NCBI GenBank assembly: GCA_977016875.1
Contig: CDRNST010000097.1
Coordinates: 1,116,001 to 1,180,000, forward strand
DNA: 64,000 bases
Origin: Pavona decussata
Lineage: Eukaryota
Reading direction: 5' to 3'
Part shown: positions 2,619 through 45,382 of the stretch, one piece after another
Layout: the number at the start of each line of letters is the position of its first letter
How positions within the stretch are numbered: the stretch's first letter is position 1
Notes under the pieces: generated by a model
The model's input: only the letters and a program-made list of their open reading frames with translations
The model's database searches: none
Told to the model about the DNA's origin: nothing
Made by a program: the position numbers and the translations under genes

Positions 2619-2981
2619 GACTGCTCTTTCAACAAGCTGCAATCTGATACAGCACTCAAAGTGTCATTCCAGGGAGTTATGAGAGTTCATGGCAGTAGCA
2701 GCAAGTGCAACCGATGGTTTTTTAAGTTTAATGGCAATGAATGCAGTGGGCCAATGACGATTGAAGCTGTCATGTACACCAATTGGCCATCATCTGCTGG
2801 GAGTCCCAATCTGCTTCATCACCGATCATTTGAGGGGTACTGTGTGAACATCCCACAAGGCGCGGTAACAGTGGCATTATGGGTAGGAAAGTGTGCAAGC
2901 TTTACCTTGGGTAATGCCAACACTGGTTGGATTTATGTGTCCCGGATAATCATCGAAGAAGTGGCTAGACCCCAGTCTTAA
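2619..2981 (+). CDS. CTHRC1: CTHRC1-like copy A, last coding exon (C-terminal globular domain)
   Basis: tgcag acceptor. DCSFNKLQSDTALKVSFQG..CNRWFFKFNGNECSGPMTIEAV..FEGYC..LWVGKC..TGW..SRIIIEEV matches the CTHRC1 C-terminal domain. TAA stop. Confidence 0.9.
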   Translation, partial: DCSFNKLQSDTALKVSFQGVMRVHGSSSKCNRWFFKFNGNECSGPMTIEAVMYTNWPSSAGSPNLLHHRSFEGYCVNIPQGAVTVALWVGKCASFTLGNANTGWIYVSRIIIEEVARPQS

Positions 2982-3080
2982 AACGGCACTCTTCAAACTT
3001 TTCTTTTTTCTCATATATGGCAGTGGCAATTTTATTCAGTTTCAATTTTTTGTAGACATTTGCAGATAACTTTCAAGCAG

Positions 3081-3268
3081 ATAGACCTATTCGGCTGACG
3101 CAATGTTGTACCCAATTCAAACCCTTTCGGCATAAAATGTTTTGTTCTAAGTATTTCCATATCATTTAAATGTGAATGCTACATTATAACGCAGATGCAA
3201 TAAACAAAGAATCTTAACCCCGGGGGGTCTGAATTGGGTACAACATTGGGTTAGCCGAATAGGTCTAT
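3081..3268. mobile_element. Palindromic MITE in 3' flank/UTR of copy A
   Basis: About 45-bp inverted termini atagacctattcggct...agccgaataggtctat; absent from the homologous flank of copy B. Confidence 0.8.
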
Positions 3269-3366
3269 TGATCATTAATTGTTAGAACACAGTGCTGCCT
3301 GTGATTTCATGTATACTTAATAAACTATATAGCAGTGTTTAGGTGAGCTACAAGTTATAGATAGGT

Positions 3367-3577
3367 AAATAAATAAATAAATAAATAAATAAAAAAATAA
3401 ATAAAAATAAATAAATAAAATAAATAAATAAATAAAACATTTACCTCACTTCCAGTCCTATGGAGTTACTATGAACCTTTATCACGGTATTTGATATGAT
3501 ATGATGATATGATATGATAATCTTTATTTACCGTGGATAAATAAAGATTATCATATCATATCATCATATCATATCAT
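3367..3577. repeat. (AAAT)n microsatellite followed by inverted (ATATG)n/(CATAT)n hairpin
   Basis: Seen directly. Confidence 0.75.
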
Positions 3578-4844
3578 TTTTAATTTTGAAGTTGGCCAGG
3601 AAATCCCAAACAACTGACCCTGCTAGAAAAGGAACCTTAAAATCAGTAAAAAGGCAAAGTTTGAGAGTCTTGAAAAATATATCTATTTATAAAATTTTAT
3701 AAATTCATGAATTTATGAAGACCTTTATATAAAGACGGAAAAACTTGCCTTTTTCTGTACAGTTGGGTTCGATTTCCTGAGCAGTTTTGTCCGCCTGTGT
3801 TCCTCCCCACGGCAGTAGGTTTTGATTTGTAACTGAGAATACTGCAAGGAAACGGAAATTAATTTAAAATACAATCACCATTGAGTCTCCTTTTTTTTTT
3901 CAGAACTCTCAGTAGATAAGCTGGACTGCGATAGTCGTTTTTCACAACGCTTGCATTCCTCGCATTGAAAACTTGCAACAGGGGGTCTACCTATTATTGC
4001 TGCAACCTCTAATTGTTATTTCTATTCAACAGCGTGGTACGTCAAGTATGCCCAGTTCATATTTTGTGCCATTTTCGTGTCGAAAGCAATTGGATTAATC
4101 TTGATTGTAGCACGACCGTTGATTCAAATACCAAACGATAGAAGGTTCAAAAGGGTTTTTCGGTCGCAGGAAACCTTTCTTTTATGTCGAAATTTTGCCG
4201 GTGGCCTTTCTTGTGTTTTTGCATGCATGCAACATTCAGTATGCCACTTCAAATAGAAACGTTTGGGAGAAAGTCATCAAGAAGAATTTTCTATAAATGA
4301 AAAAAATGCCTATTTGAAATAACACAGGATCCTTTCCCTAATAATGTACTAAGTATTTCTTTAAAGAGAATACACGAACCGTGGCCACTGATTTCGAACT
4401 TTCTGAAAAAAAAAAAAACTGGCTGTCTTAAAATGTTGCCATGGTAACACCGAATATCAATGAAAAAGAGACTTACGAGTTCAAATTAATCCCAGATACA
4501 TTTTTGAAAGGTTGATTACGTTTCCTCAAATATTAAAAAAAAAGTTGTAAACTTTCAAAGTCGGCACGGGCAGAATCCGCCTCCTTCCCTTCGCTGTTAA
4601 TAGGGTTAAACCACTCTTTACATCCTGTATATAACCGTTTCCCGAAATATAGGGACTAAGGATTTTACCGCTTGTTTAATTTCCTAAAAGCTTATAGCCT
4701 TTGCTTTTGTTTTGTTTTAAGTCGGGCTTAAGGATTGCCTGAGGTGTTCAGGTTAACAATTTCACAGTGGCTTTGCGTGGTTCAGGGGAAGTGTTGCCAG
4801 GCATCCTGTAGAAATACACACTGTGACTGCAAGCTAAAGTGTAA

Positions 4845-5144
4845 AGCCGCCGTTACACGTTGAAACTTTTAGCTGAAACTTGTGTGCAACGGCGCTGCGA
4901 AACAAGTTTCAGCAGGCCTTGTACCGTGTAACATGGTCGGTTTTTTTGACACTTTTTCGAACTTCGTTGCGAGACAAGTTTCACGAAAAGTGAAACGGTT
5001 TTCTACTTCTGCAACCGCTCGCAACGGTTGCCGTGGTGAAAAAAAGAAGAGTTTCACCGTGTAACACCACGTCGTGAAACTGGTCCCGTTGGTCGTTGCA
5101 CACAAGTTTCACCCAGCTAAAAGTTTCAACGTGTAACGGCGGCT
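4845..5144. mobile_element. PIF/Harbinger-type MITE
   Basis: About 31-bp TIR agccgccgttacacgttgaaacttttagctg, flanked by TAA TSD (4842-4844, 5145-5147). Confidence 0.8.
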
Positions 5145-6339
5145 TAACTGCTATGCGCTAATTAGAATTCTGGTTAAGCAGCAAGACCAGCTACCCTGTC
5201 TAAAAGGAACGATTGTGGTTGATCATATCGCTAAGTTTGTGGAAGTAACAAAAGTTGCTGCTGTTCCTCTACAGTGCATTGTGCAAAAGTGCATGTTGGT
5301 AGCAACTTCAAACGAAAGTTCTGTTTACCATTTGGCAAACTGAATTGAAAGAGAACTAAAAATCCACCGCACCGAAAAGGATGGCGACTGGTACATTTAC
5401 CCACAATTCCTAGCGAACGAAAACCCTAAAAACGTTCACGAATACCCAAAGAAAAGTTCTACAGATTTCGAACCTAGCAAAAACAGTGTTGTTTGTTTTG
5501 GGACGTATTTCGCAAAAAAATATTTGGCTATGTACATATTGGTTGTGTTAGCTTTGCAAGGTATTGGGGTAAAATGTACAGCCGCCATGTTTTTCGTACA
5601 GTGGATTAACCCAAGCACAGTTTGAAAAAAAAAAGAGATTATTTAATTACAAAGCAGCGAAAACAAATGATTTTCTACATCATCCATTATGAGACCAACA
5701 GCCCCCATCCTCCGCTCAAAGATAGGTGAGGTTTTGTTAAATACTAGACTTTTTCCAGTCCCTTATTTTCCCAAGACGGTTGTCAAGTTCGTATGCTTCG
5801 ATCGAACTGCCGCCATCTTGGTTTGTAGCGGCGAGCACAACCTGGGCATGTTAGTGTCCATATTTTCCCGCCCCACTACTCCAACGTTATACAATCAGAC
5901 ACGAGAGGGCCCCACAGTAGTTTTCCCGCTCTCCACGGGTTGCGCTCGAAAATACAAACTATGATGTCGGCATATCTGTTTTAATTATTTTACCACACGA
6001 AGAAATTACAAAGAATAAACAACAAAAAATTAAATTAAGTTATAAAGAAAAAAGTGGTGGGGTGAAACTAAAAAGCTTATGCGTAATTCGGCCTCCCCAA
6101 TTCAACTAAATCAGTTGGCTTCAAATATAAAATCAAGTTAGTTACATGGCGTACGGACGTTGAACAGTTAAAAGCAATAACCTAGTGATTGTTGTTCATA
6201 GTTTTTAGTAATGGAATTCTTAAGGTCTTTCTAAAAATAGCAGATTGAATTAGAGGTGATGATTTCGTTGTTAAGCGAGTTATACAATTTGGGTCCTTGA
6301 AAAAACACAGACAATTTCTTAATATTTGTACGACAGTAA

Positions 6340-6855: not shown

Positions 6856-6968
6856 CGACAGTAAGGTAGATGTAAGGCATGGGAGTTTCTAGAAGTTTCT
6901 AGGTGTGAAATTGATTGTTTTGCAGGAAATTGTTACAAGATCTTGGTGGTAAGGTAAGGTCTTGAACA

Positions 6969-7115
6969 TCATTATGAAAGCGAGGCTAAGTGCAAAGCTT
7001 TTATTATGAAAATTAGATTTCATTCATATGCAAACAAAATTAATTTTCATATGAAAAGCTTTGCACTTAGCCTCGGTTTCATAATGAGATTCACAGCAAC
7101 TCGGAAATGGTCTAT
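6969..7115. mobile_element. Fold-back MITE, left end truncated
   Basis: cattatgaaagcgaggctaagtgcaaagctttt ... aaaagctttgcacttagcctcggtttcataatg palindrome. Confidence 0.65.
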
Positions 7116-17375: not shown

Positions 17376-17747
17376 AAATCCGTACTTGGTCACGGTTTTC
17401 CAGGCATTCCAGGATCAAATGGCATGCCGGGAATGCCAGGTGTCCCAGGGTCGCACGGACCACAGGGAAGAGAAGGAGCTAAGGGAGAGATTGGCAACAA
17501 GGGAGCTCAAGGAATGATGGGTCCAAAAGGAGAGAGAGGTCTCGAAGGGCCTCGTGGTAAGAGTGGGCTACCAGGGATGATGGGAATAAAAGGAGAGCGA
17601 GGAATTATGGGACACCAAGGCAGAAAAGGAGACAAAGGAGAGAAAGGAGAAAGTGTGAAAGGAAGTCCAGCAAGTGGAGTGCCACAAACAAACTGGAAAC
17701 AGTGCGTGTGGAAAAGCTCAATCGGAACATCTAACGGAAAGATCAAA
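17376..17747 (+). CDS. CTHRC1: CTHRC1-like copy B, coding exon 2
   Basis: ttccag acceptor, GT donor at 17748; 29 uninterrupted Gly-X-Y triplets then [10 protein letters not shown]. Confidence 0.92.
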
Positions 17748-17774
17748 GTAAGAGTTGATAAACAACAATTGAAC

Positions 17775-18050
17775 AACAAAAATCCGTGAATAAAGGTATA
17801 GATAAATAGATCAAGCTCGTTTAACGGGGGTGACAGTTAACTGTCTGTCACGACAGACAACTCTGTGGCCCTCAAATTCCGGATCGAATTGGAATTTGGA
17901 AATGTTGGTTTTTGAGAAGACAGGGGAAATTCGAGTACCGAGAGAAAACACTAGAAGCAACAACAAACTAAACCCACATATAACTCCGAGTCCGGGAATT
18001 GAACCTGGGGCACATCACTGTTAGGCGAGCGCTCTCACCACTATGGACTA
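17775..18050 (-). mobile_element. tRNA-derived SINE
   Basis: Reverse-strand B-box/A-box-like gggaattgaacctggg...gcgagcgctctcaccact; body tggaatttggaaatgttggtttttgag resembles common cnidarian SINEs. Confidence 0.7.
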
Positions 18051-18565
18051 ATAGCGGCTGCCAGTGGCGTGTTTACATGCTGACGCTCGATCTTACCCCA
18101 CAGAAGAATTGCAAACCACCATAATACTATGTGATACGTACGTTTATTGTAGAAAAGACCAAAGTGTCATAACATTGCTAGTAAAAAAAACACATTTCCT
18201 TTCTATTTTTTTCACGTTGAAACAAAATAAATAAACGACGGATATAAAATAAGACGTTCTCTACCTGGTATCACGTGACTCTTTTGGTTCGATGAAAACG
18301 TGCGAAATTAAGCGACGGGTTTTAAGAGCCGACGATCCTGCTGTGTTTCATCGATGTAAGAGTTGCACATCCAGTTACAGTGTTGTTATAACCTTGTGTT
18401 CGGAAGGTCTTAGGTTCCACTCCTGATAGCAGCGCTCGGATTCCCTTTTTTCCGAGACCCACTGAATAATACATCATTCTTAACCTTGTATTATTTCGTT
18501 ATCTTTATCATGATACTTGTATCCAGGTCAATTGATTTACTTGATTTAATTTTGCTTTATTACAG

Positions 18566-18922
18566 GATTGCTCTTTCAACAAGCTGCAATCTGATACAGC
18601 ACTCAAAGTCTCATTCCAGGGAAATATGAGAGTTTATGGCACTAGCAGCAAGTGCAACCGATGGTTTTTCAAGTTTAATGGTAACGAATGCAGTGGGCCA
18701 ATGACGATTGAAGCTGTCGTGTACAACAACTGGCCATCTGGAAGTCCCAATCTGCTTCATCACAGATCATTTGAGGGCTACTGTGAGAACATCCCACAGG
18801 GCGCAGTAACAGTGCAGTTATGGGTAGGAAAGTGTGGAAGCTATACCTTGGGCGATGCCAACACTGGTTGGATTGCAGTGTCCCGGATAATCATCGAAGA
18901 AGTGTCTAGACCCCAGTCTTAA
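18566..18922 (+). CDS. CTHRC1: CTHRC1-like copy B, last coding exon
   Basis: tacag acceptor, phase 0; intact C-terminal domain ending EEVSRPQS*. Spliced CDS is about 279 aa. Confidence 0.92.
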   Translation, partial: DCSFNKLQSDTALKVSFQGNMRVYGTSSKCNRWFFKFNGNECSGPMTIEAVVYNNWPSGSPNLLHHRSFEGYCENIPQGAVTVQLWVGKCGSYTLGDANTGWIAVSRIIIEEVSRPQS

Positions 18923-21687: not shown

Positions 21688-22098
21688 GCCCGGGACCGAC
21701 CTCGGTTAAGGGTACTTCCTGGGTTCGATAGGGTAAAAAAGGGAGAAAACATTTTTTCGACCAAATAGAATTTGGAGATTTTATCTAACATTTACTGAAA
21801 AAAAATTGAAAATTAAAAAGCGCGCGAGATATTTAGGAAAACGTATTTCCATCTAAAAGTAAATAAATAAAAAAAGGTGTCATAATATGTAATTTGTGAT
21901 AAGCATTGGCATAAATTAATATTTTGCCGACACGGAACAGAGAACTGGGTGCAAGTGTAGCGCGTGAGGTTTCATGGTTAGGGGATTTGAAATAGAGTCC
22001 GTTGTGTAACTTGTGACATTCTACGGTCAGCCTCCATCGGCATTGCATCAGTTTGTTTGATTTCAGTCGTTTTCCATTATCGTTTTGTCCCTTTCACC

Positions 22099-22782
22099 AT
22101 GGATGAAGCAGCTGTGAAGCAAGCTATCGCGGAGAATAATAGTGGCCTTCTCATGCAGATTCAGGAACTCGTTAAGTCCTCGGTTTCTGATCTCAAGCGC
22201 TCTAACGAGTCCATTGCCTCTAAACAAATGTCTGAGATTAAGCGAATCAAGCGCGATTCAGTTCCCCACTTCAAAAAGAAGAGCAACGAGGATCAGTTTA
22301 ACGCTATCAAAGCGGTTAAAGAGGCCGTCGAGGACGCTCAGTCCGCTCTTGAGGCGAAAGATTTCCTGAAAACGAAGGAGGCACTTGAGAAAGGTATGGA
22401 ACGTCAGAAATTGATCTTGCTTGCGGATAAATCTCCCTACGGCTGGAAAACAGTCCTCGAATACAAGCATCATGATCTCGCGGATGATGAAGAGGATGAG
22501 AAAAAGATTTATCGGGCTGAATCTAGAGCGGCAAGGTCGACAAAGCGTTTTGCTCCCCGGTCGGGCCTGCAAAAGAGGCTTGCTCCATCAGTCTCCGCTA
22601 CAACTCCGCAGCTGTCGGCTTCCCAGTTGCCCAGTTTGTTTTCGCGAGTTCGTCCACAAAGTTTATCCCAAAGATCTGCTTCTGGCGTGTGTTTTGCCTG
22701 CGGCAAGCCTGGCCACTGGAAGGTTTGTTGCCCTTATTTGCAGCAGCCTGGCCCTTCTGGTGTTAATCAGCAGTCCAAATGA
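22099..22782 (+). CDS. Gag-like ORF1 of YR retrotransposon
   Basis: ATG in acc context; RQKLILLADKSPYGWKTVLEY motif and CCHC knuckle CFACGKPGHWKVC. Confidence 0.85.
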   Translation: MDEAAVKQAIAENNSGLLMQIQELVKSSVSDLKRSNESIASKQMSEIKRIKRDSVPHFKKKSNEDQFNAIKAVKEAVEDAQSALEAKDFLKTKEALEKGMERQKLILLADKSPYGWKTVLEYKHHDLADDEEDEKKIYRAESRAARSTKRFAPRSGLQKRLAPSVSATTPQLSASQLPSLFSRVRPQSLSQRSASGVCFACGKPGHWKVCCPYLQQPGPSGVNQQSK

Positions 22783-24871: not shown

Positions 24872-24949
24872 CTGCGCAGTCCATCATTTTGTACCATAAG
24901 CCAGGGTGCCTTAACTAGTTAACTTTATTTGTTACACGTGTTTATTGCG

Positions 24950-25450
24950 GTTGTTTATGACCGTTTTCACCCTAGATTGGTACGGTGTTGTTTGTTACAT
25001 GGCCCTTGAGGGGTCTGTTTATGTTAGGCATATGATGCTGTTTATGAATGTGCTCATCCTAGATGGGTGTTGTTTGTTACATGGCCCTCGATGGGCGTCG
25101 TTATGATAGTCTTATGATTTTGTTTATGAGCGTTTTCACTCTAGATGAGTGTTGTTTGTTACGTGGCCCTTGAGGGGTTTTGTTATGTTAGACATATGAT
25201 GCTGTTTATGAATGTGCTCACCCTGGATGGGTGTTGTTTGTTACATGGCCCTCCATGGGCGTTCTTATAACAGTCATATGGTGTTATTTATGAACATTTT
25301 CACCCTAGATGGGTGTTATTTGTTACATGGCCCTTGATGGGTTTTGTTATGTTAGACTTATGATGCTGTTTATTAATGTGCTCACTCTAGAGAGATGTCG
25401 TTTGTTACATGGCCCTCTATGGGCGTTGTTACGATAGTCATATTATGTTT
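24950..25450 (+). repeat. 82-bp minisatellite, 6 copies, alternating variants
   Basis: ttac(a/g)tggccc recurs at 24995, 25077, 25159, 25241, 25323, 25405. Confidence 0.9.
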
Positions 25451-25718
25451 TTTGCCTATAGCCTTAACTTTTTTATTCATGCTGTTTTTCACCCTTGATG
25501 GGTGGCTTAGGCTTTTGTTGCATGCTTAGTGTGTATCTTTCCCTGGATGGTGGTGTTTACCCTAGAGGGGTGTCGATAGCTGTGTTAGTTTATCTTTGTT
25601 TTTGTTTAAGAGCGGTTGTTTGCTTGTATTTATTACAGGGCATATTCAATAAAACCTTTATTTTTGTGGCATTCATAGTTTTTTCTCTCATCTGTCCTCT
25701 TCTTTATTTTTGCTCTAG

Positions 25719-26722
25719 ATATCTTCGTTTCCGGTTTCTGGTCTTCAGATAGCCAGGACACTGATAGAGTGCGTCAGTTAAGAGAGAATCTCAAATCGAC
25801 CGTGCTGGCCTCCAGGGCGTCTGGTACCTCTCTGAGTTATTTAAGGGCGTTCAATAGATGGAAAGTATTTGCCAGAGATGTCCTGGGCACATCCCAGTTT
25901 CCAGTGAGGCCTACTGATTGTGCTCTTTATTTGCAGCATATTCTCGAGTCCTCCAATTCTGTTTCCGCTATCAATTGTGCGTTTTATGCTTTCAAGTGGG
26001 TCCATCTCCTGGCCGGAGTTGACTCCCCTACCTTGCATTCTACTGTTGTCGCAGTAAAAGATGGAGCTGTTCGCCTTGCAAGTCGTCCAGCCACCAACAG
26101 GAAGGAGCCCCTGGATGTGAATCATCTCAAGATTCTTGCTTCAGAGTGCGTTCAAGAAGATCTCTTGCAATTAAGAAATTTAGTCATGTTTGTTATAGCC
26201 TTTTCTGGGTTTCTTAGAAGCTCTGAGTTGTGTTTCATTCGCAGTAGGGACGTGGAGTTTAATGAAGGTTTTGTTACTATCAATATCGCAAAAAGTAAGA
26301 CGGATCAGTTGAGGGAGGGGAAATCCATTGTAATTGCTGAGTCTGGTTCTTGCACTTGTACTTGTACCCTACTTAAGTCATATATGCTGAAGGCTGGTAT
26401 TATTGATGGCTCCGATGAGTTTGTGTTTAGGCCTATTACGTCTTCAGGCTGTCGTAAGCGCCTTATTTCTGTTAATAAGCCTATTAGTTATTCTTCTTAC
26501 AGGCAGTCTTTCAAGAAGTAATTTGCAAGTATTGTTCCTGACATTTCTAAGTTTAGCACACATTCAGAAGGATCGGGCGGTGCTACCTTGGCTGCTAGTT
26601 CCGGTGTGTCAGAGAGGAATCTTCAGCGTCATGGCCGTTGGGCTACTTCTACAGCTAAAAACATTTATGTTAAGGATTCGTTAGCTAGCAGGCTTGAAGT
26701 GTCAAAGTCTCTGTCTCTGTAG
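25719..26722 (+). pseudogene. Tyrosine recombinase of YR retrotransposon (in-frame TAA at 26519; HSxR degenerate as HSEG)
   Basis: FSGFLRSSEL, KSKTDQ; after the stop the frame continues FSTHSEGSGGAT...QRHGRW...NIYVKD. Confidence 0.88.
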
Positions 26723-28839
26723 GCTCTAGCCCTTTCTTTAGATTTCTACCATGGGCTGGCTGACCGATGTGCCCATTGCCTCACAAGTTTGTGTGTGTTC
26801 GGTTGTGTAGTGAAGGCAAAATATGTAATTTGTGATAAGCATTGGCATAAATTAATATTTTGCCGACACGGAACAGAGAACTGAGTGCTAGTGTAGCGCG
26901 TGAGGTTTTATGGTTAGGGGATTTGAAATAGAGTCCGTTGTGTAACTTGTGACATTCTACGGTCAGCCTCCATCGGCGTTGCATCAGTTTGTTTGATTTC
27001 AGTTTGTATTTTCTGTTTTCAGTGTTTTATTGTTATTTCGCCAGACCATAATTTGTTATTCAGTTTCTTATTTGGTGTTTTATTGTAATTTCTTAACCTT
27101 AAAACCCCAAAGGTTGCGCCATAGCATTGGTCGGGGGTACACGGTCCCTATTTTCCCTACGGGGTTTTCGGGTTTACGTGTCCGGCTATGGTGCTTGTAA
27201 CAGCTTGTATTTTGTATATCTTATTTTATTGATGTGTCAATAAAACCATGGGCTGGCTGACCGATGCGCCCATTGCCTCACAAGTTTGTGTGTGTTCGGT
27301 TGTGTAGTGAAGGCAAAATCTTCTTAGTGCGAGACGCCCCAGAGGAATTTTCGCGGCAAACGCTTCATCCGGGAGCTCTTATTTCAGAAATAAGCATATT
27401 TTGTTTACATCTCGCCTGCAGAAAATTTCTTACTTCGAATTTTATATTCTTTGCCGGCGCTTCCCACATGGAAAAGTCATCAAAAAACGAAAAGAGCCTG
27501 TGGATAAAATCCGGGAAGAAGCCAGGGCCTAAGAAAAAGGGAAAGATAGGTTTCAGCGAAGATCGAAAACGTGATCTTGCAGAGAGCAACAAAGGCTCTT
27601 GGTTCGACCAAGAACTCTAGTCGACGTTGAAGGTTCTGTCGAAGGTGATCACGAAGAACTGGAGCAGCGGCCTTCAAATTAATCCACTGTTATTGGATCA
27701 AGTACACAGAGGTCGATTGCCATGCAAAAGTCCTGCAGGATAACTTTGCAAGCGTCCTGTGAAAATATCAAATATCATATTCTGCATCCTCTGGGCCGAT
27801 TTCTTTCTTCTGCAGCGAGATAAAACCAAATAACGTTTTACTGCGCGTTTGTAATGAAACATTGGCATAAAATCAGCAAGAATTAGACCGATGAAATAGA
27901 ACTCACCAGAAGCGCATGAGCCCACGTGTAATACGTTTTGCTCCGCTCTCGCTATCTTGAAGATTTCTTACGAAGAAATCACCATCGTACCTAAATAACA
28001 GTAAAAATGCGATTATACATTTCCTTTGAAACGAAATGAATAATTGCTTTAGCTTGAAGCGTAAATTACATTACACGCAATCAAAACGAACAACCTACCC
28101 AATAGATTTCATCTCTGATATCAGTGCACTCCTCAAACTCTCCGCTGACGCGCTTTCGGTTTCGTTAGCCTTGGTTTTCCCCCGTTTTCCTGGTTGATTT
28201 TTACGTTTTCCTTTCGCCACTTTCCCCATCTCGCTCGATCACAACAGCGGAGTCTAAAACGTGTCTGCAGCGCGATACTTTTTCCGCGAAATTCTGTGCT
28301 ATTGTTTTTGACTACATGGGGTCCTGTTGCTCGATTGGCTCGCCACGTAATGAGGTGTCATAATCTCCTGTGGAGGCTTGTTTTTCCTGCAAACCTTTAT
28401 CGAGCGAAAATTCGCACTTGAATTTTGGCAGAGTATGTCAACTTTGAACGAATTAATAGGGTATGTAGTTTTGACGGATTGTCGTGAAATTTGGCCAGAA
28501 GATTTGAGGAATAGTGACAAACAAAAAGATGTCAGGGAATTTTGATTTTCAAAATATTTTTCCCGTGGCGACTGTTTACGCAACACGCCTAAAACATTTT
28601 TTGCTACTCAAACTTTAGACGTGGATATCTAAATAGCCAATCAGAATTTCGTAAAAGCCTGGCACCTTTTTGTTGATTGATGCCTTGTGAATAACACTGT
28701 GCAGCGATTTTGTTCTTCGCGCGGCGTTCGATAACCGATTCATTCAATGGAACGACCATCGGTCGATTCGAGGTTCTACTGGCTCCTGGCAATAAAGCGA
28801 AGGGGGGGGGGGGGGGGGTACAGCAAGAGCATGCTACAC

Positions 28840-30610: not shown

Positions 30611-30976
30611 GACTGCTCATTTAACAAGCTACAAAATGACACAGCACTGAAAGTCTCATTCCAGGGAAACATGGGAGTTCAAAACTCCGGTATTAGATGT
30701 AACCGCTGGTTTTTCAAGTTTAATGGTAATGAATGCAGTGGACCAATGACGATTGAAGCTGTTTTGTACAACAATTGGCCATCATCTGCTGGGAGTCCCA
30801 AACTGCTTCATCACCGATCGTTTGAGGGGTACTGTGTGAACATCCCATCGGGCGCGGTAACAGTGCAGTTATGGGTAGGAACGTGTCGTGGATATGCCGT
30901 GGTGGGTGATGCTCGAACTGGATGGAATTCAGTGTCCCGGATAATCGTCGAAGAAGTTTCTAGGCCCCAGTCCTAA
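30611..30976 (+). CDS. CTHRC1: CTHRC1-like copy C: orphan last exon, intact frame, no own exon 1/2 seen
   Basis: ttttttccag acceptor, phase 0, complete C-terminal domain. Either a partial duplicate/pseudogene or an alternative terminal exon of copy B. Confidence 0.7.
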   Translation, partial: DCSFNKLQNDTALKVSFQGNMGVQNSGIRCNRWFFKFNGNECSGPMTIEAVLYNNWPSSAGSPKLLHHRSFEGYCVNIPSGAVTVQLWVGTCRGYAVVGDARTGWNSVSRIIVEEVSRPQS

Positions 30977-31796: not shown

Positions 31797-32056
31797 NNNN
31801 NNNNNNNNNNNNNNNNNNNNNNNNNNNNNNNNNNNNNNNNNNNNNNNNNNNNNNNNNNNNNNNNNNNNNNNNNNNNNNNNNNNNNNNNNNNNNNNNNNNN
31901 NNNNNNNNNNNNNNNNNNNNNNNNNNNNNNNNNNNNNNNNNNNNNNNNNNNNNNNNNNNNNNNNNNNNNNNNNNNNNNNNNNNNNNNNNNNNNNNNNNNN
32001 NNNNNNNNNNNNNNNNNNNNNNNNNNNNNNNNNNNNNNNNNNNNNNNNNNNNNNNN
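31797..32056. other. Assembly gap (260 N)
   Basis: Run of N. Confidence 1.
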
Positions 32057-32248
32057 ACTCGAGTGGGATGTTTCAGGCACCAAGAAACCAAAAAAGAAAG
32101 TCCTCTTTATAGAGGTTAGAGATATTAACGGTATATTTTCACTTCAAAATCACAAGAAAGACTTGTTTTCTCTGGCTGACGTTTCAAAATTCTCTAGACG
32201 ATGTTTAAAGGTAACTTAGCTGAGCTGCAAACGGAATTTAAGACCAGT

Positions 32249-33280
32249 TTAAAGAACAGATTGCACCCGATTTCGATGATAATGATAACGACCACGGATA
32301 AAAGAGCAACGTGGGAGACAGCAGCAACAATATTTGAAACAGCTTTTCCGAAATTCAGGACTTAGAAAAGCATATACGGTGGGATTTAAACACGAGCTTG
32401 AAGCCTGCGCTATGAAACATAACAGTTGTAACATGAGATTGTTCTCAACAACGTCGTAGACTCGGAGCAATTCCACAACAAAATTCAATCCCCAGCATAC
32501 GGCAAAGACAAGAAGCGCCATGACCATCAAACGAATTGTTCTTACTTTACATTTAGCAATTGCGCCGTGAATTTCTCCAGTCTTGCTTCTTTTCCATAAA
32601 CTAACTGCACTCTTTGTGTAAGCTACCAACATGTACGTAAAAGGAATAAGAAAAGCCGTGATGAAAAATAACGTTTTAGACAGCTGTGTTTTCAAGGTCG
32701 AAGACCAGGTACAGGAAGTGTATTTACTACACTTTTCGGTTGCTGCGTCATTCTCTTTCCAGCATATTTCTTGAGAATTTGATTCAACGCTGAAAATAAA
32801 CGGCATAGCGGTCACGAAGGCGTACAACCAAACACTCGCAATTAAAAGAAGGTAGGTTTTCAAATACTGAGGCGCAAGACTCTTAAAGGGTTGTAAAATG
32901 TTTCTGTGTCGATCCCAAGCTATGGCGGCCAAACTGCTGAAAATTGCAGCGGCACATGAAAGTTCTATAAACACGACGGCTTTGCATGATGATTCTGGTG
33001 AATCCTCCAATCCGCTTATTCTCAACAATGGTACAACCACATGATAAAGAACATGAGTCAGCGATAAATGAAAGATCAGAAAACTTGAAATACTTGTCCG
33101 TATCTTTCGGCTTCGTAACATAACGTAGATGACGAGAAGATTGAGAAAGACTCCGCAGCCAATCAGAACATAGTAGGTTAAAGTCCACAAAAACATGAAG
33201 TTTCCTAAGCACAAGTGCAGCTCCAAAGAGGAAGCGTTCGTGGCACTATCGTTTGTCCGATTTGCTAATATTTCGCTCAT
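32249..33280 (-). CDS. Single-exon class A (rhodopsin-like) GPCR, peptide-receptor-like orphan
   Basis: Seven hydrophobic segments; N-terminal N-glycosylation sequons; AIAWDRH (DRY-like), FLIP..Y in TM5, FAVCW in TM6, SSCLNPTVY (NPxxY), C-terminal Cys cluster. First ATG at 33280. Confidence 0.9.
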   Translation of the reverse strand: MSEILANRTNDSATNASSLELHLCLGNFMFLWTLTYYVLIGCGVFLNLLVIYVMLRSRKIRTSISSFLIFHLSLTHVLYHVVVPLLRISGLEDSPESSCKAVVFIELSCAAAIFSSLAAIAWDRHRNILQPFKSLAPQYLKTYLLLIASVWLYAFVTAMPFIFSVESNSQEICWKENDAATEKCSKYTSCTWSSTLKTQLSKTLFFITAFLIPFTYMLVAYTKSAVSLWKRSKTGEIHGAIAKCKVRTIRLMVMALLVFAVCWGLNFVVELLRVYDVVENNLMLQLLCFIAQASSSCLNPTVYAFLSPEFRKSCFKYCCCCLPRCSFIRGRYHYHRNRVQSVL

Positions 33281-35798
33281 TTTGACGCACACAACGCTTC
33301 TGCGGTCACCTTCTCTGCATGAGAGTACTAAGCAGGCTGACTAAGTTGACTTTAAGCTGTTTTCACGCGAACCAAGCAATTAAGGACCCTTGAGCCAAGT
33401 GCTGTACTGATGTGACTCTACCATTGAGTCTGTCAGTCAAATACTCAAGAGTCCCGTTCAACTAAAAGCTATATTCTGCAGTCCTTTCCTGTGGTGCCGT
33501 TTATTACACTGTACAAGGTGTTGGAACTTTTTAGCCAGTGAGTGAGCACAAACTTTATGTCATGTTGTTTGCCTCGTAATACCCTGCTAAATTTTAGACT
33601 TTGGAGTTGAACGAATCGAAATACCGAGCCGTTTTGGTCTCGTAAAATTTAATTTAATTCGCGGAGCCGAAGAGCAAGGGTTTTTTTTTTTATGTAAATT
33701 GAGAAGTAATTAATTCCTAGCACCGCAAAGGATTGGCAAAACAGCTAAGTAAATAGAGACAACTTAAAACAATGAAAGAAAGGAATCAAAGTGGAGAGTT
33801 TGGCCGAAACACAAGGACAAGCGTTTTATGTAGCAGAAGGAAAAGTTAATTTAAATGTCGCGGAGGCTTTTTCTTGACCTACAGTAAAAGAAAAACAAAC
33901 AGATCTGATAAAAGTTGTGTAAATAACTTAAAATAAGTTAATCGCGGATAAGTTGTCATTATTTTTGTGCTAAAAACAGAAATTAAAGCTGATGTATAAA
34001 AAGAAGGCCAGCTTTTTTTTTTTCATTAAAAAGTAGAAAGATTTCAATTTTTTCTGAAATACCTACCTGTCAACAACTGTTACCATGGTAACATTAAATT
34101 CAAGAAATAATGAATCATGACCACAATAATGACTAGTCAGCTTAAATTAATTTCTGAAAGTTTTATGGCTCTATCTCAAATATAAAGGAAAAAATCTGAA
34201 CGTTCAAAGTCGGCGCGAGCAGAACCCACTTCCCCTGGCTCTTTATCAGGTTAAAGTACTTTGATTCTAAATCCTGTACCTGTAGCTATAGATGAGGAAA
34301 ATTAGGGCTATTTTTATTTTATTTCATTATTATTATCATTATTATTTTATTATTATTATTATTTTTTTAATTGAGGCTCATTGACGATGGTCTGAGGTGC
34401 TCCGGTGAAACCAAAAGTACTTTGTCAAACGAACGCAAAAATAGCCCCATGTTATAAAAATAGCATATCAAGGAAACAGCGAAAAGACAGTATGTAAATG
34501 ACCTAGTAGGTGACTAGCAGCCCCGTTTTCCGCTCGTGAAGTGGATTTCCCATACAACGAAATACCAAGGGACTGGAAATATATGTTTGCGATAATTGGT
34601 TTTAAATCCCGTTGTAACAGATTTGTGGGGAGCCGAACAAAATCGACGTTATATTACGTATCGTTTCGACTGAGAAGGAAAGCGAAAACGATATGCCTGA
34701 ATAACATGCTGCGTCACGTTTCATCTCTTAGGGAGATGGAATTGGCAGCAGCGCATATGTCATCATGATGTCCATTTGCAGCATATGATGAGCTGGATTT
34801 TACTCTGTTGATTTGTTTCCCGTTCAAAATCAGTCATCAATGACATCTTTGCGTTATAGCGGAGTAAATTTTGCGTGGTAGAAGTTAGTGGTTCTGGGTT
34901 GTGTTCTCTATAACGGGGATTTCGTTCTCTCGAATTTCCTTAAATGTAGGCATTTTACAGTCCTTTATAACCCCGTATCATTGTGAAAATAGTATTTGCT
35001 CAAAATAATATTACATGTACCACCATGGAAGGGCAAAAAGCCTATCGAGGGGGTCCTGAGTGAGTAGAGAAAGCTTATTTTATCCGCCTCGCTCCCCCAC
35101 GCTTTACAACCCGACGAGGGTCCCCCTCAGTTAAAGTTTTGGTGGTCTTCGCGATCTCTACTATGACACGGGAATATAGGGGACAGTAAACAGTCCATTT
35201 CAATCGGATTTTTGTTTCCCTTTCGAACTTCACTGTAAATTTTGCTTGGCTGATGAATATTGTTCGTTATACCAGGGACTTCGTTACAAAGGAGTTCATT
35301 TTATGAGGTTTCCACTTCAGTAGAGTGGGAAGAACAGACGAGGTCACGTTCCACAAGGAGATTTATTTTTATGCAAGCCTGCGTGTTCAGCCCTATAACG
35401 AGTAGCCCTGAGCCAAGAAAGGGACTCAACAGACTGCTGGGCTGAGGGAGGGACGGGTGACTTAGATATAATATGCTCTTTGTTGAGTCCTTTCAATAGA
35501 TGCTTGTCCATACGTAATTTATTATACCTCACACAGAAAAGTTTCCTCTTTCTTGGCTTTGGTTCTTGATATTAGAGCATAACAGGCCACACCACTCTCC
35601 CTGGCACAGAGCCCTTGGGTCCTGTTGTGCGCTGATATGAGACATGTGCGTCAATGGATGGTAAATCAATATTTTGTCTGGCACCGGCTCTCTAAAAAAC
35701 CATTAACAAAAGACTTAGTCTTAAAAGGTGAGAACACACCCAGCGTCGTTCATATCATCACAGCAGATCGGAGGTAAAGTTCTTGTGCTTTTCTGATC

Positions 35799-35909
35799 AT
35801 GGCAAGGTACTCCGTAGCTTTGTTGGTTCTCTGTTTATCAGTGGGCTCACACGCCACCACTACGAAACCTCAACAACAGGAAATGGCAGCTTCGAAAGAC
35901 TTGTGTGAG
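35799..35909 (+). CDS. CTHRC1: CTHRC1-like copy D, coding exon 1 (signal peptide)
   Basis: MARYSVALLVLCLSVGSHATTTKPQQQEMAASKDLCE; donor GTGAGT. Confidence 0.85.
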
Positions 35910-36318
35910 GTGAGTACACGGGTATTACGGATTTCTTATTTGATTGCAACGGGGCGGTCGAACCGCTCTAAGAATAGTGTGAAATTTTGATTGGGATCTG
36001 AAGATATAATAAAAATCAGGGCGCTCAGTAAATCGGAAACAACAAGGCTAGTTTGCACTTAATCTTAGAACATCAAACTCTCAGGAAGTTTCCTGAGATA
36101 AAGTTCAGTTCAAAAGGTTATCTTTGCTGAAGAAGCCATCTTTCAGAAGAGATCAAGACATAATTAGAAGCTCACTGTGTTTACTGAAGTTTCTTGGACT
36201 TAAGCTATTGTCCTCCTAAACATTGCCTTGAAATTGAAGAGAGGTGCTAGTAATGTTGAATGTTTGTCTGGTTAATAATTTATTTATAATGCTTGTTTAA
36301 TTTTTCTTTTTAAGTTAT

Positions 36319-37405
36319 TTTTCTTAAAGATAATTAAGTAGGCGCCGAGGAATACTGGATCTTTGGCTGCTATCTCAAACTATGTTACTGTTTGCTGGCT
36401 CCCTGGAAGCTTTAACATATATTTTACATTCTTAAGTCATCGTGTTTGCTGAGATTGAGCCAAGCTCATAAGGTTATCATTGTTCATTAACCCATCTCAA
36501 TTAATCGCGCTGACCCATTGACCAGCTAATATTGATTTATTGAACAGATATTAGAACATAATTGGAAACAGCTTGTGTTTTCTATTAAGGTGTCCAGAAA
36601 CGATTAATCTTTGGCTGATTCTCAAAATCTATTATAATGCTTGGTATTAGTTGCACAGAATAAAATAAGAAAAATTAACAGCCTCCCAAAAATGAATTCG
36701 TCCACAAAGCAAAACGCGCCATTTTTCATCATTGAAATGGGAGGAGTGGTGCAGGTCTCAATTATACAATTCAATTTTACAAGATTGTAGATGCAAGCCT
36801 TAAGACATATTTTACATCTGTTTCCTGCAATTGAGCCTAGTTCATAAGGTTACCTTCATTGACAGAGCCATCTTAATCGCACTGACCATTGATTATAATT
36901 AACACATAATTGAAAACTAATGGATTTTACTACGATTATCTAACTAAAACTTTACGAAAGCTGCTAGATTGCCCGATTTTCTTAAAGATAATTCATCAGT
37001 AGGTGTCGAGGAATACTAAATCTTTGGCTGCTATATCAAACTATATTACTGTTAGCTGGCTCCCTGGAAGCTTTAACACATATTTTACATTCTTAAGTCA
37101 TCGTGTTTCCTGGGATTGATCCAAGCTCACAAGGTTATCTTTGTTTATTAAGCCATCTCAATTAATCGCGCTGGCCCATTGACCGGCTAAAATTAATGAA
37201 TTTATTGAAGAGATAACTACATAAAAGAAAACAGCTTGTGATTTCCTATTAAGGTGTCCGGAAATGATTAATCTTTGGTTGGTTCTCAAAATCTACTATA
37301 ATGCTTGGTATTAGTTGCACAAAATAAAATAAGAAAAATAAATGAATTCGCCCGGAAAGCAAAACGCGCCATTTTTCCATCATTGAAATGGGAGGAGTGG
37401 TGCAG
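36319..37405 (+). repeat. Local direct duplication in intron 1 of copy D (about 430-bp blocks, 36319-36755 and 36977-37405)
   Basis: Long near-identical stretches, e.g. gctggctccctggaagctttaaca...cttaagtcatcgtgttt. Confidence 0.8.
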
Positions 37406-39295
37406 ATCGTGGTGCAGGAGTGGTGCAGGTCTCTATTTCTGAATCAAGAGAACTTTGACAAAACAATCCAGTTTACGAATTGATAAACATTTCTATATTT
37501 TTCTAATAAACAACTCACAAGCTACACTGTTGCGTGACAACCATGAACTGGAAGTGTCTCCATAAAGATTTGTATGTTTCAATGTCTTCTTCTGCCATGA
37601 TGATTTGAAATTGGGGATAAAGACGATTTTAAGAGACTAGTTTTCGTAACTAATGTCCGTTTGCTTCCATACTTTCGCACGCAAAATAAATACTCAGAAA
37701 CGAGCACATTATATTCGAAGTCCAACAAAGCATTTTAAATGCCGTCAAATTTGGTCGGTATGTTAATTGTCCCCCTTAACTCATCCACACCTGATAAAGA
37801 GGAAACGACTTCTTTCTGGAGAGAAACGAAAAATAACTAAAACAGAACATTGTGTCAATGTCACGAAGAAGCAATAAGGACATGCTACGGCTCCTATACA
37901 TTTGGTATTTCTGGGCGTTTTCCATTTACCAAGATACTCCGGAAATTCCGGTTGGGTTGTAAATTGAACATGCTTTTTTGGGTTCGTTCCACTGAAAAAT
38001 TTCCGGAAAGAATGGAACTTGTGAAAGGTAGTCCTTTTCCCGTTGGAAACTTTTCCGATGGAACTGCGTGTTCCATTTATAAGTTTCACCAGGTTTGACT
38101 AGTTCCAGGCTGTTCACGACCATATCTTCGGTATTTCAATTTTCGAAGATTGTAGCTGCGCATGTGGAAGCTTCAGACATATTTTACATCTTTCTCCTGC
38201 AACTTACTCTGGTTCATAAGGTTATCTTCATTGACAGAGCCATCGAAATCGCACTGATCCTTGGTTAATTAAAAGTAGTTTCTTAAAAAGATTACCGGAT
38301 AATTAGAAGTTTTGTATTTACTAAGAGCAAGTTAGAGAGGAACCGTCTCTTGCATCTGCATCTAACAATTAGAAATATGGTGTAGAAAATTAGCTTGCAG
38401 AAAAATACTCCTCATCTCCACCTTAGAGAATCAGACGATGCGCGATCACATCAAGACGGCATATTTATCTTATGGTTCGTCGAATTTAGCGCCATCTAAC
38501 GCGCAAATTAGATTGGCGGGAAAACGAAAACCTTTAGAAAGCTACTTTTTCCTTTTCCGTTTGTTTCCTGACGGTCGATGTTTAGCCAGGTTCCTGGAAA
38601 GATCAGAGGATGTTTTCGTCTCCAATTGACTGTGTGTTTCCACGGAAGGCAAGCTTACTATTCAGAAAGACTTCATTACTAAACGACAATAGACAGGAGC
38701 TAACAATCGGCACTTTACTATACTGTTAATAGATTGCCGCTTTCAAACTCAGGAATTCGATCAAAGCAACCGTCACTCAACCTAATTAATTTTAACACCT
38801 CTACACGGCTCCTCGTATTGTCAAGGCATTAACTGTATCTAAACCGAATTTATTGTCTATTTTCAATTGCCGGGAGGAGGAGATTGGGCCATACATAACA
38901 TACATAACTCTAAGAATGAAAAGCTATAGCTATGACAATGACACTGAGAGGAGAAATAGTTTGTCCAAAGAGGTTTCCTTTGAAGTCATGATTGGATCAA
39001 CGATATTGGACTATTCAGGAATGATCCAATTCTGAATTTGAAACGTGTCTGTCGAAATTTGATTGCCATGTCAACATTCAATGTACACTAACCCACCACA
39101 CCACACCAGCGGCATTTGCTCAAATATTAAGATAGTCATAACTGTGGAAAGCTCGAGCTGGCTGAATTCGCCCACTTATAGATGTTTGACAGATCCTAAT
39201 GGAGGAACATAAGTGGCACTAAAGATTCTTTATTTTTGGCCTTACTCTGTTGTTCTGAGTGTAGCTATCTTATGAACATTATACTTTAATCCTAG

Positions 39296-39667
39296 AAAGC
39301 CATGATTGGCCATGGTTTCCCAGGCATACCAGGATCAAATGGCATGCCGGGAATGCCAGGTGTCCCAGGGTCTCAAGGGCCACAGGGAAGAGAAGGAGCT
39401 AAAGGACAAATTGGTAACAAGGGCGCTCAAGGAATGATGGGTTCAAAAGGGGACAGAGGCACCGAAGGGCCTCGTGGAAAGAGTGGGCTTCCAGGAATGA
39501 CGGGAATGAAAGGAGAGCGGGGAGTGATGGGAACTCAAGGAAGAAAAGGAGACAAAGGAGAGAAAGGAGAAAATGTGAAAGGAAGTCCAGCAAGTGGAGT
39601 GCCACAAACAAACTGGAAACAGTGCGTGTGGAAAAGCTACGACAACAGAGATACCGGGAAGATTAAG
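39296..39667 (+). CDS. CTHRC1: CTHRC1-like copy D, coding exon 2
   Basis: cctag acceptor, GT donor at 39668; 372 nt of Gly-X-Y run plus [10 protein letters not shown]. Confidence 0.92.
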
Positions 39668-40424: not shown

Positions 40425-40438
40425 AATTACAATTATTG

Positions 40439-40473
<35 letters not shown>

Positions 40474-42331: not shown

Positions 42332-43580
42332 TCAGAAAAAATCAAAACTGTACATGTGTCGGCTCTTACGGTATCTTGCGAGTAGAAGAACCAGATCAAT
42401 TGCTGTATAAGTAGGAACATTTGACAGCCCCATCAAATGGAGATCTGTGAAGACAAAGTCACTTCCAAGGCCCTTTTGAAAAAGGAATTGTTTAACATCG
42501 TTCCAAAAACCTTGTGTTATGTAACAGTGCAGAAAAAGATGAATAATAGTTTCTGTTTCTTGTTCACAGAAGCAACATTTATCTGATTGAACAAGGTTGA
42601 TTTTCTTTAGAAAATCATTCGTTGCAATCCTTCGATGTAAGAACTTAAAATGGAAGGTTCTTAATAAGGTAGAAAGCGTACAGTTAAAGGCAATTGTGTA
42701 TGCTATCTTCCAATTACCATCACAGTCATTATGACCACGCAGGTCTCTGCGCCACTTTTCTTGGCTCCGGATGGGTGGGGGATTTTTTTTCTTCAAAAGA
42801 GAAGTATAGATAAAATTATTGACCTTACGTTCAGTGAAAGTCACTCCTTTCACAGTTTCATTGGCACGCATCGGAGTACTATGAAGCTTCCTCATAAAGG
42901 TTTTTACAGATGATAGATCTCCAGAGAATTCTAATCATTTCAGTTCTTGAGAAGCGGTCCTCAATTCGTCATACCTAAAGAGGGTACCATTCTCGGCTTG
43001 TAAGTGAGAAATTTTGCTGATACCGTGGCTTGACCAATGCTTATAGAAAACGGGCCGGTCATTTATTTGAATTAGGGAATTGTACCAGATGATCTGATCA
43101 CCAATGTTTCACTATTAATAGTCGCGACGTCAGAGAAATGTAGCTCCGCCCAGGTTTCTAGGACCTCACGGACAAATGGGTTACTTATCCCTAATATAGG
43201 GATGTCTTCTTTATGGAGGTTATATGAGAAAATTGCCTCACCTCCATGTTTCTTTTAACTGTCATCAAAGATAAATTTCCCTTTTCCCCTGTTTGTCTGA
43301 TCAAGGTTGTTTGATCCAGGAGACTTTAAGAGATTGATTGAACACGTTAATATCGGTCATCTTCAGGCCACCCTTATCGTAGTCCTTGGCTATGACAGTT
43401 CTTTCAATCTTGTCGCCTTTACCGTTCCAAAGAAAATCGAAAAGGAGTTTATTGACCTTTCGTAATGCCTCCTTGGAGGTGGGTAGAGGTGTTCGAATAT
43501 AGACAAATTGGGAAACCAGAAGACTTTTAATGAGAGTTATTTTGCCAATCAAAGTAAGCCTTCTGAACTGCCATAATTCG
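42332..43580 (-). mobile_element. L1/Tx1-like LINE ORF2 fragment
   Basis: GKITLIKSL..SQ, FLWNGK..GGL, FKFLHRRIATN..CCFC..ETIIHLFLHC (zf-RVT). Confidence 0.8.
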
Positions 43581-43739
43581 TTTACAATTAGTGATTATAT
43601 TAGTGATCAAGTGTATCCAAACTCCTTCTTCTTCGATCCTGTCACTTCTTTTGAAATTGAATTTGAGGTATCAGTTATCATCACCTCTGAACAAAGGATA
43701 TGGGCTTGTACTCTTGCCCTATTCGTATTTTAAAAGGTG

Positions 43740-44920
43740 CCAAACACATTTTATCTGACATCCTAGCTAATATAATAAATTTGTCGGTGCAAACCGGTGA
43801 TTATCCCTCCAAATTAAAGCATGCGAAAATAATTCCAGTGTTCAAGACAGGTGACGAAACTGAGCCAGGCAACTACTGACCGATCTCATTACTCTCTGTG
43901 TTCAATTGATTACGACGTAAACTTAATATTATCTGATAACAACTTGAAGAAAAAGACCTCTCTCGAACATAAAAACTACGTAAAATATTTAGGTATTCTG
44001 GTTGGCAGTAACCTCTCCTGGCGATACTACATAGACTTTATTTCATCGAAAATAAGTCAAGGTGTTGGGATCATTTCGAGGCTTAGGCATTTTCTGCCTA
44101 CAAGTACCCTTTTCATAATCTATCGTTCCTTAATTGAACCTTACATCTCTTATGGATTAGCTGCCTGGGGACAAGCTACCGCTTCTCATCTAAACAAAAT
44201 TCTTCTGCTGCAAAAACGAGCCCTTCGTCTGATGTACTTTTCTGATAGTAGAACTCACGCCATCCCTCTGTTTGTCAGTTCAAGTCTTTTGTCTCTGATT
44301 ATGCTCTATTTTAAACATATTGCTACTCTAATGCATGATATTTTTAGCCATTGTGCTCCTCCAAAAATCTCTGAACTGTTCACTCGTTCTGACCAGATCC
44401 ATTCTCACTACACTAGATTTTCAGCGTCGCGTAATTTTCATGTTCAACTTTCAAGACTCAACCAACAGCTGCTGTCCTTTTCTAGAATTGGAACGAGAAT
44501 TTGGAATAAAATTCCTCCTCAACTACGTGAGTTACGTAAAACACTTTTCAAGCGTAAACTGCATGAATTGCTCTTAAAGGTTTTGGAGACTGAGGAGGTG
44601 TATGTTGATATAAACGCTGTTACTCGAATCAATCTTATGTCACTACTCAGTTAGCTTACATTTAACTTTCTAAATAACAATTAGTCATTTAGGTGATTTA
44701 TTTATTCATTTATTTTCCTATTTAATTCTTTTTCTCTTTGTTTAATGAATCTATTTTGTGTCGTTAATATTTTTGTTTTTCCTTTTGAGCATGTTAACAA
44801 CTATCAATGCTACCCACCTCGAATAGCCCTTGATAATGGTGGATAACTAATATTGTAAAAAGTGTCTTCTCTTATAATAAATTGTTGTTGTTGTTGTTGT
44901 TGTTGTTATTGTTGTTGTTG
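43740..44920 (+). mobile_element. CR1/L2-group LINE 3' fragment, internally deleted, with (TTG)n tail
   Basis: VKYLGILV..NLSW..YI, IYRSLIEPYISYG..WG, LQKRALRLM, IWNKIP; tail at 44882-44920. Confidence 0.8.
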
Positions 44921-45019
44921 TACAACACATTTACACTGTATTTTATTCTAATTTAAGTGTTATGTCAACCAGTGACATGAGGGATAACTTTACTATGTGC
45001 TGTTGGATCTTAATTCCAG

Positions 45020-45382
45020 GACTGCTCATTTAACAAGCTCCAAGCTGACACAGCACTGAAAGTCTCATTCCAGGGAAACATGGGAGTCTATAACGCTGGT
45101 TATAAGTGCAACCGCTGGTTTTTCAAGTTTAATGGTAGCGAATGCAGTGGACCAATGACGATTGAAGCTATCGTGTACAACGATTGGCCATCCTCTGCTG
45201 GGAATCCCCAACTGCTTCATCACAAATCATTTGAGGGCTACTGTGAGAACATCCCACAGGGCGCAGCTAGAGTGGAATTATGGGTAGGAAAGTGTGGTGG
45301 TGTAACCTTGGGTGATGCCGACACTGGATGGAATTCAGTATCCCGGATAATCATCGAAGAAGTTTCTACGCCCCAGTCCTAA
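45020..45382 (+). CDS. CTHRC1: CTHRC1-like copy D, last coding exon
   Basis: ttccag acceptor, phase 0, intact domain ending EEVSTPQS*. Confidence 0.92.
   Translation, partial: DCSFNKLQADTALKVSFQGNMGVYNAGYKCNRWFFKFNGSECSGPMTIEAIVYNDWPSSAGNPQLLHHKSFEGYCENIPQGAARVELWVGKCGGVTLGDADTGWNSVSRIIIEEVSTPQS

Follow-up and report, generated by a model that had tools for sequence, protein, structure and literature searches.

Can one exon belong with one paralog at its ends and with another in its middle? The question is raised by a 64,000-nucleotide (nt) stretch of the stony coral Pavona decussata (contig CDRNST010000097.1, here C97, positions 1,116,001 to 1,180,000), referred to below as the window. Its plus strand carries four related last exons, designated copies A (2619-2981), B (18566-18922), C (30611-30976), and D (45020-45382). 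They encode the head domain in tandemly arranged CTHRC1-like genes, whose products consist of a short collagen stalk followed by a C-terminal domain. The initial annotation described the exons as mosaics, in which a conversion-like tract switches the partners from A with B and C with D at the ends to A with C and B with D in the center. We instead favor, at a probability of roughly 0.6, the reading that the mid-exon pattern consists of common letters combined with recurrently changing sites, and not of a piece exchanged among A, B, C, and D.

Conflicting sites in the four copies

At the exon ends and in the flanks, A and B do group against C and D, as the initial annotation had stated. Across the four copies, 21 sites follow this AB/CD split, and a further 6 three-state sites unite A and B; the 5' examples originally quoted correspond to exon positions 9, 12, 30, 39, 96, and 132. 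Six sites follow an AC/BD split (exon positions 70, 120, 205, 219, 227, and 246), and three follow an AD/BC split (256, 258, and 284). Sites of the AB/CD type are absent between exon positions 192 and 279. Within this interval lies a run of four AC/BD sites at 205 to 246, followed by two AD/BC sites.

The grouping of these four central sites, A with C and B with D, was also confirmed. Exon positions 205, 219, 227, and 246 correspond to window positions 2823, 2837, 2845, and 2864 in A; 18764, 18778, 18786, and 18805 in B; 30815, 30829, 30837, and 30856 in C; and 45224, 45238, 45246, and 45265 in D. The tract proposed around them covers 2781-2864 of the plus strand in A (exon positions 163-246), which spans the end of variable loop 2, the core strand at residues 64-75, and the start of the strand at residues 81-89. 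Some details required correction. Three of the four sites are synonymous (CGA/AGA, GGG/GGC, and GCG/GCA), rather than two as first reported, and GTG/GAG alone changes the residue. The original list of sites named the four central ones correctly and omitted both the two AC/BD sites outside the tract and the three AD/BC sites directly after it.

Standard recombination tests on the four sequences were not significant. The pairwise homoplasy index (PHI) gave p = 0.46, and a GENECONV-style fragment test, the kind of check originally suggested for the four exons and other paralogs, gave a global p of at least 0.23.

The exon center in the wider family

At least 150 CTHRC1_C last exons were found in the genome at E ≤ 1e-19 (183 candidates, 150 of them scored); they form arrays on numerous contigs, among them C3, C48, C51, C56, and C486. 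The close clade of the window copies contains 24 members, arrayed on C97 (11 copies), C49, C374, and C20. Once the 20 other close paralogs are added, the supposed mid-exon switch, with A as kin of C and B as kin of D, fails. The A/B clade consists of A, L002, and L004 together with B, L003, and L006. The sister of C is L011, located 100 kb upstream within that array; the two are 96% identical across 2.4-2.7 kb that include the flanks. D lacks a close sister; "C+D" therefore denotes merely what falls outside the A/B clade. Trees of the 5' and 3' parts place A, B, C, and D alike. In a tree built from the center only, A groups with L002/L004 (99/94) and C with L011/L007 (92/91). A clade of B with D is not in the best center tree, yet it is not rejected by the approximately unbiased (AU) test (p-AU 0.24).

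The states at the four sites were read across 26 copies. Position 205 is C except in B and D (A), L009 (T), and the two outlying copies L025/L026 (A), and position 246 is G except in B, D, and L002 (A) and in L025/L026 (T); both positions lie within a CpG. At both, A and C have the near-universal letter and B and D each carry a rare letter at a CpG, with 246A having presumably arisen a third time in L002. Positions 219 and 227 occur in the combinations G-T, C-A, G-A, C-T, and A-A. These appear to be old two-state sites with all four combinations present in the family, and B shares its states with its sister L003, which already has 219C/227A. Mapped onto a tree of the exon ends only, position 205 requires 3 Fitch steps, 219 requires 5, 227 requires 5, and 246 requires 3; over the full length of the exon, the consistency index ranges from 0.54 to 0.64.

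No rare state is common to A and C; B and D have in common one exclusive state (205A) and one near-exclusive state (246A). Among the 22 intact close copies, however, one exclusive shared state is found in 23 of 231 pairs, mostly nonsisters, which puts the B-D pair at background level. The central stretch of A is identical or nearly so in L004, L006, L007, L011, and L018. A genome-wide search for a donor of the central 60 nt of B matched only the 24 known copies and returned nothing better than these (D, 54/55; L003, 58/60).

The place of these sites in the domain suggests how such a pattern could form. A structure was predicted for the part encoded by the last exon, with 25 paralogs as the alignment; the N-terminal piece of the domain, contributed by the preceding exon, is missing from it. 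This model is all-beta, at a mean predicted local distance difference test (pLDDT) score of 64; its conserved center forms two long strands (residues 64-75 and 81-89), and the variable segments fall into low-confidence loops (residues 25-28, 45-62, and 95-100). The exon center would correspond to two core beta-strands; it is the least diverged part of the exon throughout the clade and carries no substitutions that define the A/B clade. Where such substitutions are lacking, only recurrently changing sites would look informative among four sequences. The case carries a caution, in that four sequences taken from a family of at least 24 give misleading "informative" sites precisely where the family is most conserved.

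Several members of the close clade are broken. L003 (C374:15364), the nearest relative of B, contains an in-frame TGA; homology of L018 is lost after exon position 322; L024 is frameshifted; and L025/L026 lack the first 84 nt and contain stops but keep the conserved center. The array on C97 (1.007-1.238 Mb) is collinear with that on C49 (6.79-7.00 Mb), in mirror order, and divergence between counterparts is very uneven. L019 and L021 differ by ∼0.7% in the 3' flank and by 5-6% in and around the exon, L026 and L025 are ∼2% apart, and A/L002 and B/L006 are 15-17% apart in their flanks. Instead of being separate loci, the C97 and C49 counterparts may represent haplotypes that have diverged strongly; if so, some of the "paralogs" are alleles.

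Copy D presents a separate irregularity. At exon positions 247-258 (window 45266-45277) it has an "RVE" motif (…GCTAGAGTGGAA…) in common with the C20 copies L014/L023 and with L025/L026. The nearest relatives of D have "TVQ" in its place, making this a further short block that conflicts with the tree.

Probable exchange within the family and rival explanations

The broader proposal that conversion or unequal exchange shuffles segments among the paralogs found support at the level of the family, whereas the specific A-C/B-D tract did not. In a test modeled on the incongruence length difference (ILD), separate trees for the 5' and 3' parts gained 41-53 log-likelihood units (lnL) against a null of 16 ± 6, a gain reached by 0 of 120 random partitions. 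For 22 copies, PHI was significant with a 50-nt window (p = 0.0005) and gave p = 0.087 with a 100-nt window. Treeness was 0.31 in the center versus 0.45 at the ends, a difference reached by 2 of 200 random partitions. On a fixed topology, the ratio of center to end branch lengths was 0.91 for terminal and 0.51 for internal branches, which fits an erasure of deep divergence better than a uniform constraint. At third positions, the A/B clade differed from the other copies by 0.10-0.17 in the center and by 0.29-0.45 and 0.22-0.36 at the two ends. In the GENECONV-style check of the wider family, a fragment shared by L003 and L017 had a global p of 0.011, and the A-C fragment had a global p of 0.85. 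The decay of linkage (r2) with distance was weak (p = 0.02-0.08), and this counts against exchange in the family.

The clearest single case lies outside the window. At exon positions 272-300, within variable loop 3, L019 (C97:1059745) equals its neighbor L011 (C97:1043571) except for a 3-nt insertion, and elsewhere it follows its counterpart L021 (C49:6954449). The patch measures ∼30-45 nt and contains 8 differences in 30 nt where 1.0 is expected (corrected P ∼9e-4). It appears to be one clean short patch copied between array neighbors, from L011 to L019. Exchange among family members has thus probably occurred, and on the basis of the family mosaic signal and the L011-to-L019 patch, we infer that short-tract non-allelic gene conversion operates in the array. 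Such conversion probably helps the recurrent states to spread. Between A and C or between B and D, no individual event could be demonstrated.

Other approaches to the same question were tried and rejected. Reciprocal AU tests of segment trees, in which each segment rejected the trees of the others, proved too liberal, as short segments resolve randomly, and they were replaced by the ILD-style control. A 3SEQ-style triplet scan yielded 68 hits at p ≤ 0.001 (including A/L002/C and D/L009/B), which were not counted as transfers; they arise because private changes cluster in the "major parent" (L002 or L009) and the "child" keeps the consensus. A split of center versus ends as the breakpoint model was not significant, being reached by 19 of 120 partitions.

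Several observations weigh against the reading that common letters and recurrently changing sites account for the center. In a post hoc shuffle of the order of informative sites, the run of four had p = 0.014 and the six consecutive non-AB sites had p = 0.003. Simulation without recombination, with the family tree and site rates in place, gave 1.6 AC/BD sites on expectation, versus 6 observed, and produced a run of four with P ∼0.001; therefore, simple recurrent mutation under a general time-reversible model with gamma-distributed rates (GTR+gamma) fails to generate what is observed. Two options are left: a few sites exceed by far the heat permitted in the model, where rates were capped near 3.5, or exchange occurred. 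Furthermore, B and D share two rare synonymous letters 41 nt apart, inside a 55-nt stretch with otherwise one difference, and the G-to-C and T-to-A transversions (in either direction) recur 5 times each, unlike what mutation bias would predict. The statistical tests disagree on whether the clustering of sites exceeds chance.

Of the alternatives, the one that survives best is a real short conversion between B and D, or between B and a D-like donor. A copied segment no longer than 55 nt (exon positions 193-247, at 18752-18806 of the window in B and 45212-45266 in D) would have brought 205A, 219C, 227A, and 246A together. Over this stretch, B and D are identical except at position 206; among the 22 intact close copies, 205A is exclusive to them and 246A is otherwise found only in L002. 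The highest center identity of D is to B (91%), the clustering of sites is nominally significant, and short patches do move in the array. Against this, L003 already carries 219C/227A, so two letters are left to explain, both at CpG positions, and D's 206A, 248C, 249T, and 251G are missing from B. A single exclusive shared state is background for nonsister pairs, the B-D fragment has a pairwise p of 0.18, and the B+D clade stands outside the best center tree, though not significantly so. We consider such a conversion unlikely.

Next, the pattern might have arisen with no exchange at all, through recurrent mutation at a few very hot (CpG) sites, toggling between V and E under selection, and synonymous-site constraint in the center. 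Much of the evidence given above suits this account: homoplasy is high exon-wide, positions 205 and 246 are CpG positions, linkage decays weakly with distance, third-position diversity is lower in the center, and the triplet-scan hits stem from clusters of private changes and not from transfer. It is nonetheless improbable in our view, as the contrast between terminal and internal branch ratios is unlike a uniform constraint, the 5' and 3' trees differ significantly, the L019 patch joins a run of changes and an indel that match the neighboring gene, and the synonymous G/C change at position 219 recurs 5 times.

An exchange of the tract between A and C (∼2781-2864 in A and 30773-30856 in C), as originally envisaged, is very improbable. 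The two copies show no difference across exon positions 162-191 and 2 differences across 162-237, the fragment at 163-234 has a pairwise p of 0.02, and the private AA>GT change of C at 185-186 matches A, but many other copies match it too. The exchange is contradicted by the center tree, and it is opposed by the lack of any shared rare state, by the presence of A's stretch in five other copies, and by the nonsignificant global fragment p. The private changes of C point the same way: among the 8 in the exon center are 4 novel ones, and the sole match to A is the pair at 185-186.

An artifact of assembly or polishing, in which collapsed or cross-polished paralogs gave chimeric exons, is equally remote: the copies are similar enough (80-96%) for short-read polishing to cross-correct them, and at most 48% of the sampled words of C occur in any one run, but the 60-nt central tract of B occurs exactly once in the genome, the patterned sites are scattered over many copies on several contigs, and reads match B closely. 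Public runs containing the sequence are labeled as coral samples. The read evidence consists of short Logan unitigs only, from which phasing over the whole exon, splice joints, and expression of C cannot be read; no junction of the two B exons was seen in them. Unitigs of run X6 tile gene B exactly over 17426-18691, without a difference and at a depth like that of a single-copy intron, and they span 18725-18838, where no alternative letter is listed for either 18764 or 18805. Coverage in run X1 is confined to exons, as expected of RNA. At window position 18697, which is exon position 132 of B, the assembly reads G and every X1, X4, and X6 contig placed there reads A; this discrepancy, which would suit an artifact, could be an assembly error or could reflect the filtering out of a B-specific unitig.

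Common letters and recurrently changing sites thus remain the preferred explanation of the central pattern, within what is the ordinary evolution of a large tandem family of a kind already known to form arrays in corals. A more far-reaching and tentative possibility is that the center is kept alike by frequent, very short non-allelic conversions, and that the three loops diversify and are sometimes swapped whole between neighbors. If true, the family of more than 150 genes would act as a recognition repertoire built of a framework and variable loops, and the letters that first drew attention to the center would be traces of conversion traffic. If the heads bind ligands through their loops, loop exchange would be a way of generating diversity. 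As it stands, family-level mosaicism of the exon with at least one clean loop swap between neighbors is of modest interest.

Gene architecture, neighboring DNA, and known systems

All four last exons match the Pfam family PF25815 (CTHRC1_C) with E values of 1e-38 to 1e-40 over profile positions 25-137, the end of the profile; exons were searched and folded singly. In A, B, and D, a short collagen G-X-Y repeat immediately precedes the domain; it is absent for C. An intron interrupts the genes near the 5' end of the C-terminal domain, such that the collagen exon ends in ...NGKIK/gt and the last exon opens with ag/DCSF at profile position 25.

Exon 1 of gene A lies to the left of the window. Its collagen exon (75-446, plus strand; Pfam Collagen E 1.4e-14) has an AG acceptor and a GT donor and includes the first 24 profile positions of CTHRC1_C. 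Copy A itself (2619-2981, plus strand) encodes 120 residues of the domain and a stop behind the acceptor cag/GAC, with a PF25815 E value of 6.6e-38. The collagen exons of genes B (17376-17747; E 3.7e-17) and D (39296-39667; E 4.1e-17), both on the plus strand, likewise encode a G-X-Y run and the beginning of the domain and are bounded by AG/GT splice sites. Among the last exons on that strand, copy B (18566-18922) is marked by the rare 205A (18764) and 246A (18805) and by a 6-nt deletion, and copy D (45020-45382) sits on a long private branch and carries 205A/206A/246A.

Copy C has a different history. The plus-strand segment 28814-31535 is a partial duplicate of the L011 locus; it comprises the last exon with its 3' flank and 1.8 kb of intronic sequence, lacks the collagen exon, and is 95.9% identical over 2751 nt to C97:1041765-1044510. 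Judged by this match, copy C appears to have been created by duplication of part of the L011 locus. The collagen exon of L011 lies 11 kb upstream of the L011 last exon, and no collagen exon was found between 18922 and 30611, which leaves C as an orphan last exon. Within it (30611-30976, plus strand), the acceptor, reading frame, stop, and poly(A) signals are intact. Its private changes number 28, of which 8 fall in a 150-nt stretch at the exon center; 7 of these 8 alter the residue, and three tandem double changes are included. Copy C is one of two things: an alternative terminal exon of gene B that evolves fast, or a relic in decay.

Between B and C, outside the gene family, stands a DIRS-like retroelement (21881-27003, plus strand) flanked by 187-nt direct repeats that are 97% identical. 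It matches RVT_1 (E 2e-8) and a tyrosine recombinase (E 3.4e-6), and its zinc knuckle and RNase H matches are weak. A run of N (31797-32056; a gap or masked sequence) begins 821 nt 3' of the stop codon of C. The run is intergenic and outside every compared exon, and neither of its edges borders a long open frame; therefore, it raises no reading-frame question. The genome sequence of C97 at locus L016, which contains copy C, has letters at these positions, so masking is a possible alternative to a true gap. By BLAST coordinates, the DNA on both sides of the run aligns to the paralogous loci L007 and L011 with order and direction kept. Segments of 68-90% identity recur farther on, with 32239-38325 resembling 54316-59363 and 46716-47405 resembling 54254-53531 in inverted orientation. 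These repeats between C and D and after D could be part of the array repeat unit or could be transposons.

Interlocus (non-allelic) gene conversion occurs in tandem families such as the globins, the opsins, the major histocompatibility complex (MHC), and the neurotoxin arrays of sea anemones. The present family resembles these systems in showing patches of tens of nucleotides between neighbors, differing trees within one exon, and deep divergence that has been lost where conservation is strongest. It differs from them in that no donor-recipient pair with shared derived letters was found among A to D and in that the standard tests on these copies were not significant. A literature search on conversion in coral CTHRC1 returned nothing relevant.

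The closest comparison is with the cnidarian Cthrc1 family described by Leclere et al. 2020 (PMC7058181), whose members consist of a short collagen triple-helix repeat followed by a conserved C-terminal domain. An intron in the 5' region of that domain is conserved across metazoans, and tandem copies lie on one scaffold in Acropora, Nematostella, and Clytia (PMC7058181). The genes of the window are alike in build, intron position, and tandem arrangement. They differ in number and in the case of copy C, a lone last exon: at least 150 last exons were counted here, whereas the published metazoan maximum is up to 31 copies, in corals (PMC7058181). The expansion of CTHRC1-like genes in this stony coral thus exceeds the published maximum about fivefold, which is of modest interest. 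Neither gene conversion nor mosaic exons are mentioned in PMC7058181.

Finally, the predicted fold can be set beside the C1q/TNF-like heads (C1q, C1QTNF5, the collagen X NC1 domain, and BclA). A sequence search against solved structures gave no match. In a Foldseek search of the Protein Data Bank (PDB), the best matches of the partial-domain model were BclA, C1QTNF5, collagen X NC1, and C1QL1, all weak (E ≥ 0.086, and thus none at E ≤ 0.001; template modeling [TM] scores of 0.3-0.4). The likeness consists of an all-beta model with variable loops and conserved core strands. All of these weak matches are C1q/TNF-like heads carried on collagen stalks, in agreement with the published modeling, by which the C-terminal domain of Cthrc1 is C1q-like (PMC7058181).

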